Assembly: GCF_947568905.1 (NCBI RefSeq)
Contig: NC_079165.1
Span: 20,398,001 to 20,462,000, forward strand
Direction: 5' to 3'
DNA: 64,000 nt
From: Ostrea edulis
Taxonomy: Eukaryota
Shown: positions 28,329 to 40,311 of the stretch, in pieces
Position numbering within the stretch: the stretch's first letter is position 1
How the letters are laid out: each line of letters starts with the position of its first letter
Notes under the pieces: model-generated
Told to the model about the DNA's origin: nothing
What the model saw: the letters and a program-made list of their open reading frames with translations, nothing else
Database searches by the model: none
Program-made: the position numbers and the translations under genes

Positions 28329-29462
28329 ATGACAGATACGAATAAAAGGCCCGTTGCATCACGGCTGTGCATTAATCTACAGGGAGACAATGACGAGGAC
28401 GGGACTACGAGACCGTCTCCGCTGTGGATTAACCCCCGCGTGGATGGACGAATGAGAGAGTCGGTGGACTTCTCATCGTGGCTCAAACCAAACTGGCTCG
28501 AGGAGCAGGGACAATTTTCGTACACCCGTTCGCCTAGTCCTGGGGCAGATTCCTCATCGGATGACGATAGCAACTCGGAAAAAAGCTGTCAACAATCGGG
28601 TGGTAGAAAGAAAGGAATAAGCTTTGCGACTGTCGTTAACATTAAAAAGGCGGCAAACCTCTTTAGAAGCAGCAGGACACAGGCACAGAAAAGACAATCA
28701 GTTGCTAACATTGCTGATTTCCCCCGAAGTAAGACGACAATTGGAATCGAGGCTTCGCGACATAGCATTTCTAGAAACAAGAGTGTTCGCTGGATGGACG
28801 GCAATTCGCGGAAAGACAGTGTGGAGGCTTATCACGATACAACAATGATATCTAGAAGTAAATCATTTTCTCATAATGAGCCAATCAGTGGTCTCTTCGA
28901 TATTTCCAAAGCGGCGGGAAAGAGGAAGCCAATCTTGCTAAACACTAAATCAACCTTACCCTCGCCAGCACCATATAGCCTTTATTTATATGCGCAAACA
29001 CCGCAGCCTCCTAAACCAGAAAAAGAATTCAAGATTCCAAAGAAAAAACGGAAGAGGCTATGCAAAATATTACCGACAGAAGATGAAGAACCGCATAAGC
29101 CAAAGATAGGCGACAGGAAGGTTTCAGAAGATGAGCTAGAGGCAATAGTGTCGAGGCTTATTCGACCAACAAATGCAAGTCGAGCAAGATCGGCTTCGAT
29201 AAGCCGAATATTCTTTCAGCATCCCGAGAAGAAGCCACAGCCACGCGATCGAGTGGATTACTTGGTTTTCGAGCCAAATCGTTTCCGAGGATTGAGGAAA
29301 GTCGGAAATAATGAAATTGAAGAGATCACAGAGAGACTGAACATGTACGATATTGAGCGGTGGCCCCCCAATTCCGCGCGGGATGAAATTCGGAAAACTG
29401 TGAAGGAGGACAAACTTGGTGTTTTAAATAGCTATCGCTGGAAAGGAATTAAGAACTGTTGA
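28329..29462 (+). CDS. Uncharacterised single-exon 377-aa basic, Ser-rich protein
   Basis: A 1134-nt ORF, GC-richer than its flanks, preceded by ttcttcag. It contains EAIVSRLIRPTNASRAR and EEITERL motifs and basic clusters (KKKRKR). Confidence 0.8.
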   Translation: MTDTNKRPVASRLCINLQGDNDEDGTTRPSPLWINPRVDGRMRESVDFSSWLKPNWLEEQGQFSYTRSPSPGADSSSDDDSNSEKSCQQSGGRKKGISFATVVNIKKAANLFRSSRTQAQKRQSVANIADFPRSKTTIGIEASRHSISRNKSVRWMDGNSRKDSVEAYHDTTMISRSKSFSHNEPISGLFDISKAAGKRKPILLNTKSTLPSPAPYSLYLYAQTPQPPKPEKEFKIPKKKRKRLCKILPTEDEEPHKPKIGDRKVSEDELEAIVSRLIRPTNASRARSASISRIFFQHPEKKPQPRDRVDYLVFEPNRFRGLRKVGNNEIEEITERLNMYDIERWPPNSARDEIRKTVKEDKLGVLNSYRWKGIKNC

Positions 29463-33401: not shown

Positions 33402-35183
33402 AATGGGGTAATGGGGGTTGCAACATCCTTGCCCGTTTGGTTGGTTGTACATTTTAAACGAAAAAGTTCATTTTTGTTATTCTGACATTACTAAATTCCA
33501 AAACCGTTCTTCATTCCATTCGACTTTTACATCGATATTAGGATTATTCAAATATAATATTTATATAGGCACTTCAATGAAAAATAGTAAACTATTTACT
33601 GTAAAAATATTTACATTTAAAATATTTCATTTTAGGTACCTCAAGTAGAGAGTAAAAAAATATTTCATTATATTCTTTTTTGAATGTGCCTTTTTCGTAT
33701 TAAACTTCCACAACATTTACCATATCATCATTTTGATACGACGGAAAAGGTGTTTACGAAAGCTTGAGAACGGTTAATTTTTAAGTCTGGTTCCCATCCC
33801 GCCACTCCTTGATCACTAGTGATATATAGTTTTATTATGTACCCATCAATGATATATACCCATCTAGTGATATATAGTTGTATCTATGGTGACAGGGGAC
33901 AGTTTCTTTGGTTCTGAAACATGTGGGTAGGGGGTATACATCAAAGTCACATTATGACAGACTAATAAAAAAAATCCTATTTCCCTTTTATGTCAATACT
34001 TGTATTTCATATTGCTGTAGTTAATAAATTATGACCCTAAATTACATGTGATTTATATATACTGGTGCGGGTGCACAAAGCATGCTCTGAGCAGGTGCCC
34101 CTTTTTTGCTTTGCTTTTCTCTCATTTGGGCTAATCCGCAACCTGCCCCCCCCCCCCCCCCCAGCACAGTACCAAACGTGAGGATTTAGACACTGTGTAC
34201 AATCAAGAACCCTGTCCGCCCTTCTTAAAAATCTACCTTTCATATGGGGCCATCCACCTTCCCTCTCAGCTACAGATCTTTTGTTGGACCATGCATGTTT
34301 TCACCGGAATTTCTTCAGCAACTGACCATGTGTCTTAGTTTCGTATTTGCACCTATCTATATGCTAGGAATCATGGTGACACCTACATGTACATGTTGTA
34401 TATCAACATTTTTATTAAGCACTCGGCTTCATTTGACATGTATCCTAAAATTATTCTACACATTTTTCCACATGTAATATCACTTCAAATATGGGGTATT
34501 TCCATTTTTTCAAAAAGTTGACCGGGCCTATAGTGCGAAACTGTCCCCTGCTTCATATTAAGAGTAATTGCAGAATGTGAATGATAATTCCAAACTGATG
34601 AATATTGAAATGTTTGTACATTACTACAAGTGTAAGGAATATTGTTATCCGCCAGACCCGATTGAAATAGAAACAAAATTGCGAGCCATTTCTAAAGAAA
34701 ACATATCGTTAAATACAACACATTTGCAATCTTGGAATTTTAGACCACCTTCAGAAAATTCATGATAGAAACTTTTAACGCTATAATATCATATCTATAA
34801 TACACCATACCGATGCAGTATTGATACTTTGTTAAATATAGCAATTCGCTATTACCGGTAGTAAATTTCTTGTTGTTCAAGTGCTCGGTTTGGAGATTTG
34901 CAAATGTTTGCATTAAAACACATTTTTTAAAGAAATATTTCATAACCAGCATTATTATTGAAACCCATTTTTTAAAGAAATATTAATAGAAATAATATAG
35001 CTACGCAACTAGTCGATTCCATGAATCCGTTTAATTTTGATGAAATATATAAAAGTTCTATAGTGTTGAAATTGTCAGTCTTTGTATACGTATAGGATCG
35101 TCAGTCTATTTCGAACAGGGAGATTCTCAGTCTACCTTAAAGAGCAAGTCTCCAACTCAATTGCAAGTCTATCGCACCGATAG

Positions 35184-35192
35184 TATATAAAG
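35184..35192 (+). promoter_or_regulatory. TATA box of the vWA gene, copy 1 (copy 2 at 40218-40226)
   Basis: TATATAAAG lies 94 nt upstream of an ATG in good Kozak context (aacATGG). AATAAA is at 37149-37154, after the stop. Confidence 0.5.
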
Positions 35193-35277
35193 ATCATTTC
35201 AAACCGAGAAACAGCAATACAAGCAGAGACGCACGAAGTAACTCTGAAACAACTCAATACAGACCACAATATTTAAC

Positions 35278-37009
35278 ATGGCATCCCCACCAGGCGGTCC
35301 GATCGAGATTTGTTTCTCGTTTGATACGACTGGATCTATGTCCAGTTCCATCAATGCTGTTAAACAGAATGTCCAAGAAATGATTCAAAGACTTCAAACG
35401 GATATACCCGGTATCAGAATCGCTGTGTTCGCTCACGGAGACTACTGTGACCGGAATTCTTCTTATGTCACCAAGTACATAGACTTTTCTACAGACTTGA
35501 AGGAACTGTGTCAGTGGGTGAAAAACGTGGGCTCCACTGGGGGTGGCGACTCGGATGAGTGCTATGAACTGGTTTTGCACGAGGTTCAAAATCTGACTTG
35601 GACGCCCGGAACTCAAAGGGCACTTGTGATGATAGGTGATGCCCACCCACATGATGTGAATTACCCAGACAATAAATTGAAGTTGGACTGGAAGCAGGAA
35701 GTCGAGAAGTTGGCAGTGATGGTGAGTAAATTACATGTTACATGATGACTAAAAATCGTCCTACCTTCCAATATTTAATTGTTGAACTCCACGACAATGT
35801 TACTTTATCTCTTTGCAAATATCATAGATTATATCAATTGTAAAATTGTAGGGTATCCGAGTGTATGGAGTGCAATGTAGAGCTTCGGGTGACAAAAGGA
35901 CCCATGACTTCTACCAAACACTAGCCGACAAGACAGCAGGCAGACGAGTAGAACTAGACCAGTTCTCCAACCTGTTTGACTTCATAATGGCCATCTGCTA
36001 CAGAGAACAAGGAGCAGAATTTCTGGACATCTATGAACAAGAAGTACGACAAAGAAACGCTAGAATGGGTCTTCATAAAGACTTGAATGCGATGTTTGGC
36101 GCACTCAAAGACGGAGAACCTTGTACGTCTTCATCCACTAAAGTGGCAGATTCGCCAAAGTCCAAAACACTTCCCTACAAGCCGGTCCTGAAAAAGGTGT
36201 CATCCTTGACAAAAGTTCCTTCCATTGTAAATCTGAAGAAAAAGACTTCAATCATTCATGGGGTCAAGAAAACAATCGCCAAAAGGTCTCCTCGCTCTGC
36301 TGTGGATAGAAAGAAAGCGAAATCTCTGGCCATTTCGTGTCAGAAGGTATTAAAGTTTAAGTAATGTTTTCTAGATATCAAGAAGAATAACGTTATGAAG
36401 TTGGAAGTAATATTAACAATTGACATCTAATGATAATCCTATTTCACAATACTGTAATTTAGATTCCAATATATCAAAATGTTGCAATTCTATATGACTG
36501 GAATATTTCTTTTGCAGATTGATACGCTAAGAAAATTGAAGAGGGAAAATGTCCCAGAGACGAATTTCTCTATGAGCAGGATACAATGGTCACCATGGGA
36601 ACTCGCCATTGCTCCCAGTAGACCGGAAGATGACGCTGAATGGGTAGAAAGACACAGAGGAAGAAGGGATTTCCGAAAATCTACCATATGTGGAGGAAAG
36701 ACATTCCCCGCAGCTGTGTACGAGTTCTCGGTGAGGAAAACTGGTGATTCCAAACGTTTTGTTGCGTACTGTAAAATGTCTTCGGGATTTACCAAAACAC
36801 GGTGTTGGGAATCCCGTCTTTTATCCAATTCGGACGTTCGATCTCAAGTGAACAAAATGGTATCCTTAGGATATCATGTGTTTGTGCGCAGATGTTTGGT
36901 AACAGACTGTAACAAGAACACGATAAAGAAGTCTCTTTTACGATATGACTATGCATGGAGACGTGTAAGAAATGTTAGAGAGTCTCACAGGGATATGGAG
37001 ATGGTTTAA
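35278..37009 (+). CDS. vWA-domain protein with a basic linker and a C-terminal GIY-YIG-like (ET-type) domain, 476 aa, copy 1; exons 35278-35721, 35852-36346, 36518-37009
   Basis: Three exons joined by two phase-0 GT-AG introns (atg|gtgagt...tgtag|ggt; aag|gtatta...tgcag|att). MIDAS-type residues: FDTTGSM, STGGGD..ECYE, IGDAHPH. The C-terminal domain has WSPW, AVYEFSV and YDYAW. Confidence 0.9.
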
Positions 37010-37669
37010 CAGTGGCGTCTACCGTGAAGACATAAACAGCAGCTATGATAATTATGTTTTGTATGCTCACCTCTGTCTGTGAATCATTTGGATGACCTCA
37101 TATTGTTATTTCATTACCTCATATTGTTACAATATATTTTGATTCTGTAATAAATTTCAAAATACATACGTGGTGAATGTAGTTTTTTTGGCATGCAGGC
37201 TTGTACTTGACAAACTAAGGGGTATATGGTATATTCATATGTGTGTGGAGGATGTCTCTGTAGCTGCCAGGCTAGACAAATCTCGTATTTCGCTTGAAGA
37301 CGACCCTGTGCACCGAGCAAAGAAATAAATTTTCCAAATTCCTTCATTCAACTATCCTCTCGCTTGCCTTATGATTCTCCTTCTTTCACCCTCACAGTTC
37401 ATGTTCCCTCGTGGCTCCAGCGACTTTAATCTGTTCATAGGATATGCTTTAAATTGAAATAAATAATGCACCGGCGGTAGAAAATGTACTCGTTAGTAAG
37501 CCACCGACTCGTGATGTGAATTCCAAGATGATGCGATATGCTAAACTTAACATATAACACTGGTAGACCTTCTAGCCTACTAGTATTTATATAAATGAAA
37601 ACAACTTCAAATGGAAATGTCCAACAATTATTGATTTGAGTAGGCAATATCTCGTATTCATTTTGAATC

Positions 37670-38000
37670 GGTGAGATCCCCTATTTGCATTTCGCAAATT
37701 CTATGGTTGTTAAATTGATCTAATTTGCAAATATAGCCTGTCGTTAGGTCCAATGCTGTCTGACGTGTTTCATACCAATTGTTAGTCCGTTCCGTACACA
37801 CTGACTGCGACTACGGATTACTACGTTTACCTAATCGAAATATGGGGCTCGTGCGAGAGTGACCGATCAACAGGGAATATTGACTGCTTTTAAACTCATG
37901 ATTTCACCTCTGGTATGTCCAGGGGTCCAGTTTATTGCCCCAATCGTAATATTGTATTCTTTATAGCATTTATGAATTTGACCACCGTTCGTTTTTTCCC
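37670..38000 (+). mobile_element. Penelope-like 3' fragment inside the duplicated unit (second copy at about 42705-43035)
   Basis: gcatttcgcaaattctatggt...gctgtctgacgtgtttcatacc...cctctggtatgtccaggggtcc matches the 22850-23170 family. Confidence 0.7.
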
Positions 38001-38384
38001 CATTTTCATCGCCAAGTTGAATCGTTTTCATGAACGAAATCATGAGCAACAACTCTGAGAACAACATATCGTTATGAAATATAGTTCGAATAAATGACAT
38101 TACCTATTCGAAATCATTCCTATTGAATTGGTGATATCACCTATTTGAATGGTGATATCACTCATTCAAGTAAGTGATCATACCTGCTATTTAAATTCAT
38201 TCATTACCAAATCAATGTAAATAGCTTGTATTGCGAACTAGGATCTGTGATATTTTATTTCTAGTCACGGAGATATCAAATTGAATTGGTATTATCACCT
38301 AAAAGAATGAATGATATAACATATTCGGAAAAAGTTATAACACTATTCAAAAAGTGATATCTGTTTAAACTGAAAAGCTGATGC

Positions 38385-38429
<45 letters not shown>

Positions 38430-40311
38430 AATGGGGTAATGGGGGTTGCAACATCCTTGCCCGTTTGGTTGGTTGTACATTTTAAACGAAAAAGTTCATT
38501 TTTGTTATTCTGATATCACTAAATTCCAAAACCGTTCTTTATTCCATTGGACTTTTACATCGATATTAGGATTATTCAAATATAATATTTATATAGGCAC
38601 TTCAATGAAAAATAGTAAACTATTTACTGTAAAAATATTTACATTTAAAATATTTCATTTTAGGTACCTCAAGTAGAGAGTAAAAAAATATTTCATTATA
38701 TTCTTTTTTGAATGTGCCTTTTTCGTATTAAACTTCCACAACATTTACCATATCATCATTTTGATACGACGGAAAAGGTGTTTACGAAAGCTTGAGAACG
38801 GTTAATTTTTAAGTCTGGTTCCCACCCCGCCACTCCTTGATCACTAGTGATATATAGTTTTATTATGTACCCATCATTGATATATACCCATCTAGTGATA
38901 TATAGTTGTATCTATGGTGACAGGGGACAGTTTCTTTGGTTCTGAAACATGTGGGTAGGGGTAGGGGGTATACATCAAAGTCACATTATGACAGACTAAT
39001 AAAAAAAATCCTATTTCCCTTTTATGTCAATACTTGTATTTCATATTGCTGTAGTTAATAAATTATGACCCTAAATTACATGTGATTTATATATACTGGT
39101 GCGGGTGCACAAAGCATGCTCTGAGCAGGTGCCCCTTTTTTGCTTTGCTTTTCTCTCATTTGGGCTAATCCGCAACCTGCCCCCCCCCCCCCCCCCAGCA
39201 CAGTACCAAACGTGAGGATTTAGACACTGTGTACAATCAAGAACCCTGTCCGCCCTTCTTAAAAATCTACCTTTCATATGGGGCCATCCACCTTCCCTCT
39301 CAGCTACAGATCTTTTGTTGGACCATGCATGTTTTCACCGGAATTTCTTCAGCAACTGACCATGTGTCTTAGTTTCGTATTTGCACCTATCTATATGCTA
39401 GGAATCATGGTGACACCTACATGTACATGTTGTATATCAACATTTTTATTAAGCACTCGGCTTCATTTGACATGTATCCTAAAATTATTCTACACATTTT
39501 TCCACATGTAATATCACTTCAAATATGGGGTATTTCCATTTTTTCAAAAAGTTGACCGGGCCTATAGTGCGAAACTGTCCCCTGCTTCATATTAAGAGTA
39601 ATTGCAGAATGTGAATGATAATTCCAAACTGATGAATATTGAAATGTTTGTACATTACTACAAGTGTAAGGAATATTGTTATCCGCCAGACCCGATTGAA
39701 ATAGAAACAAAATTGCGAGCCATTTCTAAAGAAAACATATCGTTAAATACAACACATTTGCAATCTTGGAATTTTAGACCACCTTCAGAAAATTCATGAT
39801 AGAAACTTTTAACGCTATAATATCATATCTATAATACACCATACCGATGCAGTATTGATACTTTGTTAAATATAGCAATTCGCTATTACCGGTAGTAAAT
39901 TTCTTGTTGTTCAAGTGCTCGGTTTGGAGATTTGCAAATGTTTGCATTAAAACACATTTTTTAAAGAAATATTTCATAACCAGCATTATTATTGAAACCC
40001 ATTTTTTAAAGAAATATTAATAGAAATAATATAGCTACGCAACTAGTCGATTCCATGAATCCGTTTAATTTTGATGAAATATATAAAAGTTCTATAGTGT
40101 TGAAATTGTCAGTCTTTGTATACGTATAGGATCGTCAGTCTATTTCGAACAGGGAGATTCTCAGTCTACCTTAAAGAGCAAGTCTCCAACTCAATTGCAA
40201 GTCTATCGCACCGATAGTATATAAAGATCATTTCAAACCGAGAAACAGCAATACAAGCAGAGACGCACGAAGTAACTCTGAAACAACTCAATACAGACCA
40301 CAATATTTAAC

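Follow-up and report, generated by a model that had tools for sequence, protein, structure and literature searches.

The EFFECTOR OF TRANSCRIPTION (ET) family has been described as plant-specific, and its members carry cysteine-rich, zinc- and DNA-binding ET repeats C-terminal to a GIY-YIG domain (PMC6585611). We analyzed a stretch of 64,000 nucleotides of the oyster Ostrea edulis (contig NC_079165.1, positions 20,398,001 to 20,462,000, forward strand; this whole stretch is called the window below, and positions are given in its numbering). The gene LOC125681830, at 35278-37009 on the + strand, has three exons and a 476-aa product that joins an N-terminal von Willebrand factor A (vWA) domain to a C-terminal domain with the predicted fold of the ET-type GIY-YIG domain. 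Residues of the vWA domain and of the linker between the two are numbered by the whole protein, those of the C-terminal domain by the domain, its residue 1 being aa 314.

Set against the Arabidopsis proteins ET2 (F4K933) and ET3 (Q9FJT6), the entire 160-aa oyster domain superposes, query residues 6-161 corresponding to ET3 residues 54-204. The oyster domain and the ETs have in common an N-terminal extension before the GIY-YIG core, with a conserved R-E and W-S-x-W, as well as the ET-type hallmarks, namely the Y-E strand motif and the Y-D-Y-A-W helix motif; the Pfam family of the ETs, PF19239, is matched by close orthologues and other relatives of the oyster protein. The oyster domain, however, is animal, C-terminal and fused to a vWA domain, whereas the ET domain is N-terminal and from plants; in the oyster domain the Glu, Asn and Gly of the canonical set are gone. 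Because the Cys-rich ET repeats are missing, both by Pfam and by eye (the protein stops 3 residues past the domain model), the window protein is not an ET protein.

The canonical GIY-YIG nucleases T4 EndoII (2wsh), Hpy188I (3oqg), the UvrC N-domain (1ycz and 1yd6), I-TevI (1ln0), and Eco29kI (3mx4) share the beta-beta-alpha-alpha-beta-alpha core with the oyster domain (Z 7.6 to 3.1) at an identity of 7-10%. Like them the oyster domain has tyrosines, Y68 and Y84, in the GIY and YIG strands, but the Glu is replaced by Ile, the Asn by Arg, and the Gly of both motifs is lost. On the vWA side, the bacterial and phage VWA_4 proteins with a phrog_26613 tail and the giant-virus RING-vWA proteins are 46-51% identical to the oyster protein over about 225 aa, and the motifs F-D-T-T-G-S-M and A-H-G-D-Y-C-D are the same in the oyster and the bacterial and phage domains, whereas those bacterial and phage proteins have an unrelated C-terminal partner domain, about 120 aa long. 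The alpha-kinases of the Dictyostelium VwkA type have the Pfam vWA subtype in common with the oyster protein, which is a lead only, but the latter has no Alpha_kinase match in Pfam. In contrast to Penelope-like and homing GIY-YIG elements, which are marked by a reverse transcriptase or NUMOD/DNA-binding modules and by a canonical active site, the oyster protein contains only the vWA domain and the GIY-YIG fold by Pfam and has lost the canonical active-site set.

The Gene and Its Transcripts

A preliminary description, made from the letters of the window alone, had proposed the open reading frame (ORF) of three exons, and the RefSeq model of LOC125681830 (chromosome record OX387705.1), made independently, agrees with it. 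The spliced translation is identical over all 476 aa (100% identity) to P0218, the Ostrea edulis protein XP_048778031.2, which is annotated as "uncharacterized protein LOC125681830." Two runs (X1 and X2) classed as "RNA?", the run kind being a guess, each contain one contig, of 1541 or 1301 nt, that covers the three exons, and both introns are gone exactly at the predicted junctions. The intron-containing genomic form of the gene is present in two further runs. The three-exon gene is real and expressed, and it encodes a conserved domain fusion. By Pfam, exon 1 matches only VWA-type families, exon 2 none, and exon 3 only PF19239. All the motifs quoted in the preliminary description were found in the sequence, and its statement that there is no signal peptide agrees with the lack of any N-terminal hydrophobic stretch, the first vWA strand beginning near residue 9.

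The X1 and X2 contigs differ from the window (35268-37061) at about 2% of positions, many of these differences being absent from both DNA runs; their source may be another near-identical paralogue or another allele.

Fold and Family of the C-Terminal Domain

The six close orthologues examined (6/6) all match PF19239 (GIY_YIG_domain) and no other Pfam family (best E 1.9e-4). When a profile of the C-terminal domain was searched against 1.84 billion cluster representatives, 206 relatives were recovered at E ≤0.001, and the best 150 of these include 26 with a match to PF19239 and two with a match to PF01541, the classical GIY-YIG family. PF19239 is above its cut-off at 23-27 bits in P0006, P0018, P0036, P0192, and P0213, at 39-60 bits in P0066, P0138, P0139, and P0152, and at 155 bits in P0024. 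The matches of P0066, P0138, and P0139 reach E 1e-10 to 1e-16; P0138 and P0139 pass the PF01541 cut-off too, P0066 is just under it, and P0152 matches PF19239 only. P0024 (Mercenaria mercenaria XP_053393955.1, 991 aa) carries an N-terminal helix-turn-helix (HTH) of the transposase/CENP-B type and five tandem PF19239 copies that account together for the 155 bits; the full canonical catalytic motifs are found only in the last of its five repeats. A single-exon gene for a 164-aa ET-type GIY-YIG protein with canonical motifs was also observed on a 1.4-Mb contig of an ENA assembly (L002:8001-8495), and the sparse, short gene calls nearby suggest that this contig is eukaryotic.

An AlphaFold model made with only the six close sequences was unusable, with a predicted local distance difference test score (pLDDT) of 54, and an alignment of 150 sequences was used instead. 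It gave a C-terminal domain with a pLDDT of 94.3 and a predicted template modeling score (pTM) of 0.89, in which a beta-beta-alpha-alpha-beta-alpha core follows a small N-terminal extension. The best Foldseek match of this model in AlphaFold-DB Swiss-Prot was Arabidopsis ET3 (E 1.1e-4, TM 0.62, over query residues 6-161), the second was Arabidopsis ET2 (E 2e-3), and UvrC N-terminal domains came next. In the AlphaFold-DB clusters, molluscan kin were followed by plant entries named "ET2-like" and "GIY-YIG domain-containing" (E 1e-4 to 1e-3). Foldseek found no significant match to the domain in the PDB, GIY-YIG entries appearing only at E near 1. VIA-align, used for a second look and for an independent, non-Foldseek search of 48,161 PDB chains, placed T4 EndoII first (Z 7.6-7.9 over 108-112 residues), followed by Hpy188I, UvrC, I-TevI, the N-domain of AtGRXS16, a 5-hydroxymethylcytosine-specific endonuclease, and Eco29kI; GIY-YIG enzymes are 7 of the top nine PDB representatives, and unrelated folds start at about Z 3.3. 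The best matches of the model in BFVD are four viral entries (M1I060, M1HHK8, M1H415, and M1HWP8; E 2e-4 to 3e-2), and we take this accession series to belong to chloroviruses.

Sequence and profile searches of the PDB with the C-terminal domain returned no match or chance ribosomal ones, a search of the ESM Atlas returned only noise (scores of 0.58 or below), and a word-index protein search with the canonical-motif relatives gave four matches, no plant ET sequence among them. No Pfam domain was found in the N-terminal extensions of the longer paralogues. From the structural matches to the ETs and to the GIY-YIG enzymes, the C-terminal domain is predicted to be a GIY-YIG fold of the ET subtype, and the likeness to ET proteins that had been proposed from the order of short motifs holds in the structure comparisons of the exon-3 peptide and in the profile matches of its orthologues and relatives.

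Loss of the Canonical Catalytic Residues

The catalytic columns were read from an alignment to the canonical-motif relatives. Those relatives show G-I-Y-E, V-Y-I/V-G, a helix Arg, E-N, and Y-A-W-N. In the window protein, A66 replaces the Gly of the GIY strand, where Y68 and E69 are retained, and K86 replaces that of the YIG strand, where Y84 is retained; the Arg column is occupied by R95, but I136 and R148 stand where the relatives have their Glu and Asn. The ranges aligned with I-TevI (model 64-151 against chain 2-93) and with UvrC (51-149 against 1-89) likewise put Y68 and R148 at the Tyr and Asn positions of these enzymes. The replacement of the metal-binding Glu and of the terminal Asn, which the preliminary description had noticed, is borne out by I136 and R148. 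Its further statement that the catalytic Arg is kept needs correction: R100, the Arg of E-S-R-L, lies outside the canonical column; R95 lies in it, and this column is not conserved in the fused clade.

Among 309 domains, the full set of Tyr, Tyr, Arg, Glu, and Asn occurs in 0/148 of those fused to a vWA domain as against 18/161 of the others, a class that includes fragments of fused genes. Fused domains carry Val, Ile, Thr, or Ala in the Glu column, and only about one in five of them has Arg in the Arg column. A family-specific set, R9, E10, W24, W27, E69, R124, Y143, D144, Y145, W147, and R158, is conserved whether or not the domain is fused; within this set E69 and R124 do not vary, and the conservation of Y143, D144, Y145, and W147 is at least 80-90% in either class. 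The fold and one surface thus conserved appear to be strongly constrained, and the chemistry does not. Since the usual catalytic residues are lost, it is more likely that this nuclease-fold domain binds nucleic acid than that it cuts it.

The Basic Linker and the Partition of Charge

The linker (residues 236-313) is poorly conserved and ranges from 22 to 111 aa among relatives. As had been described, it is basic, with an isoelectric point (pI) of 10.5 in the window protein and a family median of 10.9, and its Lys/Arg clusters resemble nuclear-localisation signals. Over 120 relatives the median pI is 5.1 for the vWA domain, 10.9 for the linker, and 10.3 for the C-terminal domain.

The vWA Domain and Its Relatives

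Exon 1 matches the Pfam family VWA_4 (PF25106) with E 1.5e-10 and 41.3 bits, the cut-off being 27. When 120 full-length relatives are aligned, residues 1 to about 235 are the best conserved portion of the protein, and the residues of the metal-ion-dependent adhesion site (MIDAS), D16-x-T18-x-S20, T87, and D121, are 97-100% conserved, in agreement with the N-terminal vWA domain of MIDAS type first read from the sequence. Pattern scans with two invariant vWA motifs found relatives encoded in 154 viral and 297 prokaryotic stretches, the best of them 46-51% identical over residues 9-233. These closest relatives are phage proteins, including those of jumbo phages, and proteins of a giant-virus metagenome-assembled genome (MAG), cyanobacteria, myxobacteria, and planctomycetes; the bacterial carriers are mostly filamentous cyanobacteria, Myxococcota, and Planctomycetota. 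That the vWA block keeps this level of identity to phage, giant-virus, and bacterial proteins argues for a conserved binding function. The language-model neighbours of the domain include ciliate proteins that combine an alpha-kinase with VWA_4, and in one nearby Atlas cluster, to be taken as a lead only, 99% of members have Alpha_kinase and 77% VWA_4. The kinship with VwkA, bacterial, and viral vWA domains that the preliminary description had proposed was thus recovered by search.

The viral and bacterial vWA domains continue into a conserved tail of about 120 aa that corresponds to the C-terminal part of phrog_26613, and an ET-type GIY-YIG domain was found beside none of them among 160 fetched loci. 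To judge from neighbouring genes (RNA ligase, NAMPT, and a PurZ-like enzyme), two of the viral contigs are phage-like; others are giant-virus MAGs, one of which encodes RING and vWA together. On one phage-like contig (L008:1068-5080), the vWA-plus-tail gene lies near a second vWA-like gene (phrog_2971), a PurZ-like adenylosuccinate-synthetase homologue, and NAMPT. In a giant-virus MAG (L036:3365-5116), a single ORF holds a RING finger, the same vWA subtype, and a tail of the phrog_26613 type; this contig is very AT-rich, with a GC content of 17% over the fetched stretch. In 29 of the 80 bacterial loci fetched, the vWA-plus-tail gene is followed directly, on the same strand, by ligA, the gene for NAD-dependent DNA ligase. 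All 29 are cyanobacterial and come from several orders (Microcoleus, Lyngbya, Tychonema, Chroococcales, Stigonema, Calothrix, and Phormidium), as at L095:2944-6373 and L156:2956-6134, with 27 others within L084-L158. The adjacency could be an operon or merely conserved synteny.

A maximum likelihood tree was built from 67 vWA blocks of lophotrochozoan, viral, and bacterial origin, 20 of them lophotrochozoan. All 20 lophotrochozoan domains form one clade, with a Shimodaira-Hasegawa-like approximate likelihood-ratio support (SH-aLRT) of 99 and the annelid Owenia basal, and the clade is nested within no sampled viral or bacterial group. Within this sample the tree is consistent with the animal lineage having arisen once and long ago, and it gives no support to a recent viral transfer. 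As other eukaryotes lie outside the sample, the tree is compatible with vertical as well as horizontal descent, including the viral or horizontal origin suggested in the preliminary description.

Distribution of the Fusion

With one full-length member as query, 1,745 proteins were retrieved at E ≤1e-5. Fusions of full length are present in bivalves, gastropods, and a chiton as well as in a brachiopod, a nemertean, and an annelid. One species often has many paralogues, as in Haliotis, Mercenaria, and Mizuhopecten, and the fusions form one clade across Lophotrochozoa. In the databases they are named "uncharacterized" or "VWFA domain-containing," and a few bear the automatic label "Ariadne-like RING finger protein R811," which derives from the vWA domain. 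Full-text literature searches on the fusion, on the UniProt and LOC identifiers, and on vwkA in oysters found nothing relevant, and no link to the family could be made for a "GIY-YIG DC" transcript of a mussel (PMC6215123). The system had been put forward as a candidate undescribed one; names and literature agree with this, although the fusion is widespread in Lophotrochozoa. It is an unstudied new combination of two known domain families.

A Proposed Function and Its Alternatives

We propose that the gene specifies an intracellular protein of three parts. The acidic N-terminal vWA domain, with its MIDAS intact, would dock a partner protein in a metal-ion-dependent way. A linker that is disordered and strongly basic would join it to the C-terminal domain, also basic, of ET-type GIY-YIG fold, from which the canonical Glu and Asn have been lost, along with the conserved positions of Arg and Gly. 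The C-terminal domain and the linker would bind nucleic acid, most likely DNA, without canonical cutting, and the protein could then work as a two-handed adaptor that brings the partner held by the vWA domain to the nucleic acid held by the other end. We infer this tethering of a nuclease-dead, nucleic-acid-binding module to a MIDAS docking module beyond the level of the domains themselves, and hold it with moderate confidence, the chances being about even. The interpretation of the preliminary description is supported to this extent, with nuclear location and DNA binding as predicted properties; of the three outcomes named in advance as refuting it (no match to GIY-YIG folds, no spliced transcripts, a fusion family already characterised), none was observed. 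Some observations weigh against our proposal. The PF19239 match of the exon-3 peptide itself (18.5 bits, E 0.0017) is below the gathering cut-off of 21.4 bits; basic charge by itself is no proof of nucleic-acid binding; the conserved polar residues E69, R124, D144, Y68, Y143, and Y145 could form a non-canonical active site; and the ET2 domain of plants was reported to nick DNA, that is, to cut a single strand (passage of PMC6585611 citing Ivanov 2008).

The last two points would suit a C-terminal domain that is still an active nuclease or nickase, with a site re-wired from Y68, E69, R124, Y143, D144, and Y145 and a vWA domain that regulates or targets it, and R95 of the window protein does occupy the canonical Arg column. 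The relatives with the full canonical set, however, keep the same invariant residues, so these are no replacement for the lost Glu and Asn; moreover, hydrophobic residues fill the Glu column of the fused clade, none of whose members has all five residues, and we consider such an activity unlikely. The GIY-YIG fold may instead have been re-used to bind a protein or a small ligand in cytoplasmic regulation of the kind of VwkA or of RING-vWA proteins. Loss of the catalytic residues would agree with this, as would the joining of the same vWA subtype to an alpha-kinase in ciliates, to RING in the giant-virus MAG, and to the tail of about 120 aa in bacteria and phages, but the linker and the C-terminal domain are strongly basic family-wide and all the structural relatives are DNA enzymes, which makes a re-use of this kind decidedly doubtful. 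It is highly improbable that the gene belongs to a mobile element, as a passenger or a coding gene, or is an artefact of assembling a repeat. The gene does sit in a duplicated unit of about 5 kb, and GIY-YIG domains are known in Penelope-like elements; yet independent DNA runs contain the locus, and the tandem arrangement, not dispersed insertion, accounts for the copies. We rejected the mobile-element explanation on the Pfam content (vWA domain and GIY-YIG fold only, with no reverse transcriptase or transposase), on the spliced introns, and on the vWA tree, which broadly matches the species groups (bivalves, gastropods, chiton, and annelid).

A role in innate immunity or genome defence overlaps with our own proposal. 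Here the vWA domain would sense or recruit a factor, the GIY-YIG fold would recognise foreign, damaged, or mobile-element nucleic acid, and the gene arrays would reflect an arms race. O. edulis has, on this one chromosome, at least seven loci whose 476-aa products are at least 90% identical, with tandem copies in the window, and this recent multi-copy amplification, together with the many paralogues per genome in the three genera named above, hints at genome surveillance or defence. The vWA type is also common to phages, giant viruses, and bacteria with complex lifestyles, and the Mercenaria relative P0024 pairs a transposase-type HTH with ET-type GIY-YIG repeats. Against this, the vWA domain is strongly conserved and not diversifying, and copy number alone is weak evidence; a defence role is conceivable though rather unlikely. 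More specific, and quite unlikely as it stands, is a surveillance protein across Lophotrochozoa whose MIDAS vWA domain, about 50% identical between oysters and cyanobacteria or jumbo phages, would recognise one ancient universal ligand and whose inactivated ET-type GIY-YIG domain would tether it to DNA.

Gene Copies and Surrounding Sequence

The coordinates of LOC125681830 and of the features around it are given in Table 1. The second copy of the gene starts 5034 bp downstream of the first, its coding sequence differs at 5 nucleotides and 3 amino acids, and it is probably LOC125681832.

Table 1: Features of LOC125681830 and its tandem copy, in window positions.
Feature	Position	Strand	Remarks
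Spliced transcript contig, run X1	35268..37061	+	
Exon 1	35278..35721	+	aa 1-148; N-terminal two thirds of the VWA_4-type vWA domain; carries MIDAS D16-x-T18-x-S20, T87, D121
Intron 1	35722..35851	+	130 nt, GT..AG, phase 0; spliced out in the RNA contigs of runs X1 and X2
Exon 2, first part	35852..36112	+	aa 149-235; remainder of the conserved vWA block, from the conservation profile and the phage/bacterial alignments
Exon 2, second part	36113..36346	+	aa 236-313; weakly conserved Lys/Ser/Pro-rich basic linker
Intron 2	36347..36517	+	171 nt, GT..AG, phase 0; splits the linker from the C-terminal domain at domain residue 1
Exon 3	36518..37009	+	aa 314-476 and stop; predicted ET-type GIY-YIG-fold domain without the canonical Glu and Asn
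Second tandem gene copy	40312..42043	+	exons 40312-40755, 40886-41380, 41552-42043
Two units of ~5 kb in direct tandem	33473..43458	.	offset 5034 bp; 99.2% identity over 4959 aligned bases

Elsewhere in the window, ORFs overlap on both strands through a tandem array at 45238-45991, in which a peptide unit of 18 residues (about 54 bp) is repeated at least six times. An unbroken ORF of 377 aa, rich in Ser, Lys, and Arg, lies on the + strand at 28329-29462, about 6 kb upstream of the first gene copy.

Conclusions

The ET-type GIY-YIG domain, called plant-specific in the literature, is abundant in lophotrochozoan animals, and matches to its structure extend to cnidarian-like, prokaryotic, and viral entries; the viral matches in BFVD could bear on how plants and animals share the domain. 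A large unstudied family with a clear two-module logic is defined, and a vWA module unusually conserved across bacteria, phages, giant viruses, and animals is brought to light. If the surveillance function set out above were true, the "plant-specific" ET nuclease domain would be part of a cross-kingdom toolkit for sensing nucleic acids, and the gene arrays would be explained as an amplification of the immune type. For the biology of the oyster, this recently amplified gene is a candidate for functions in genome stability or defence.

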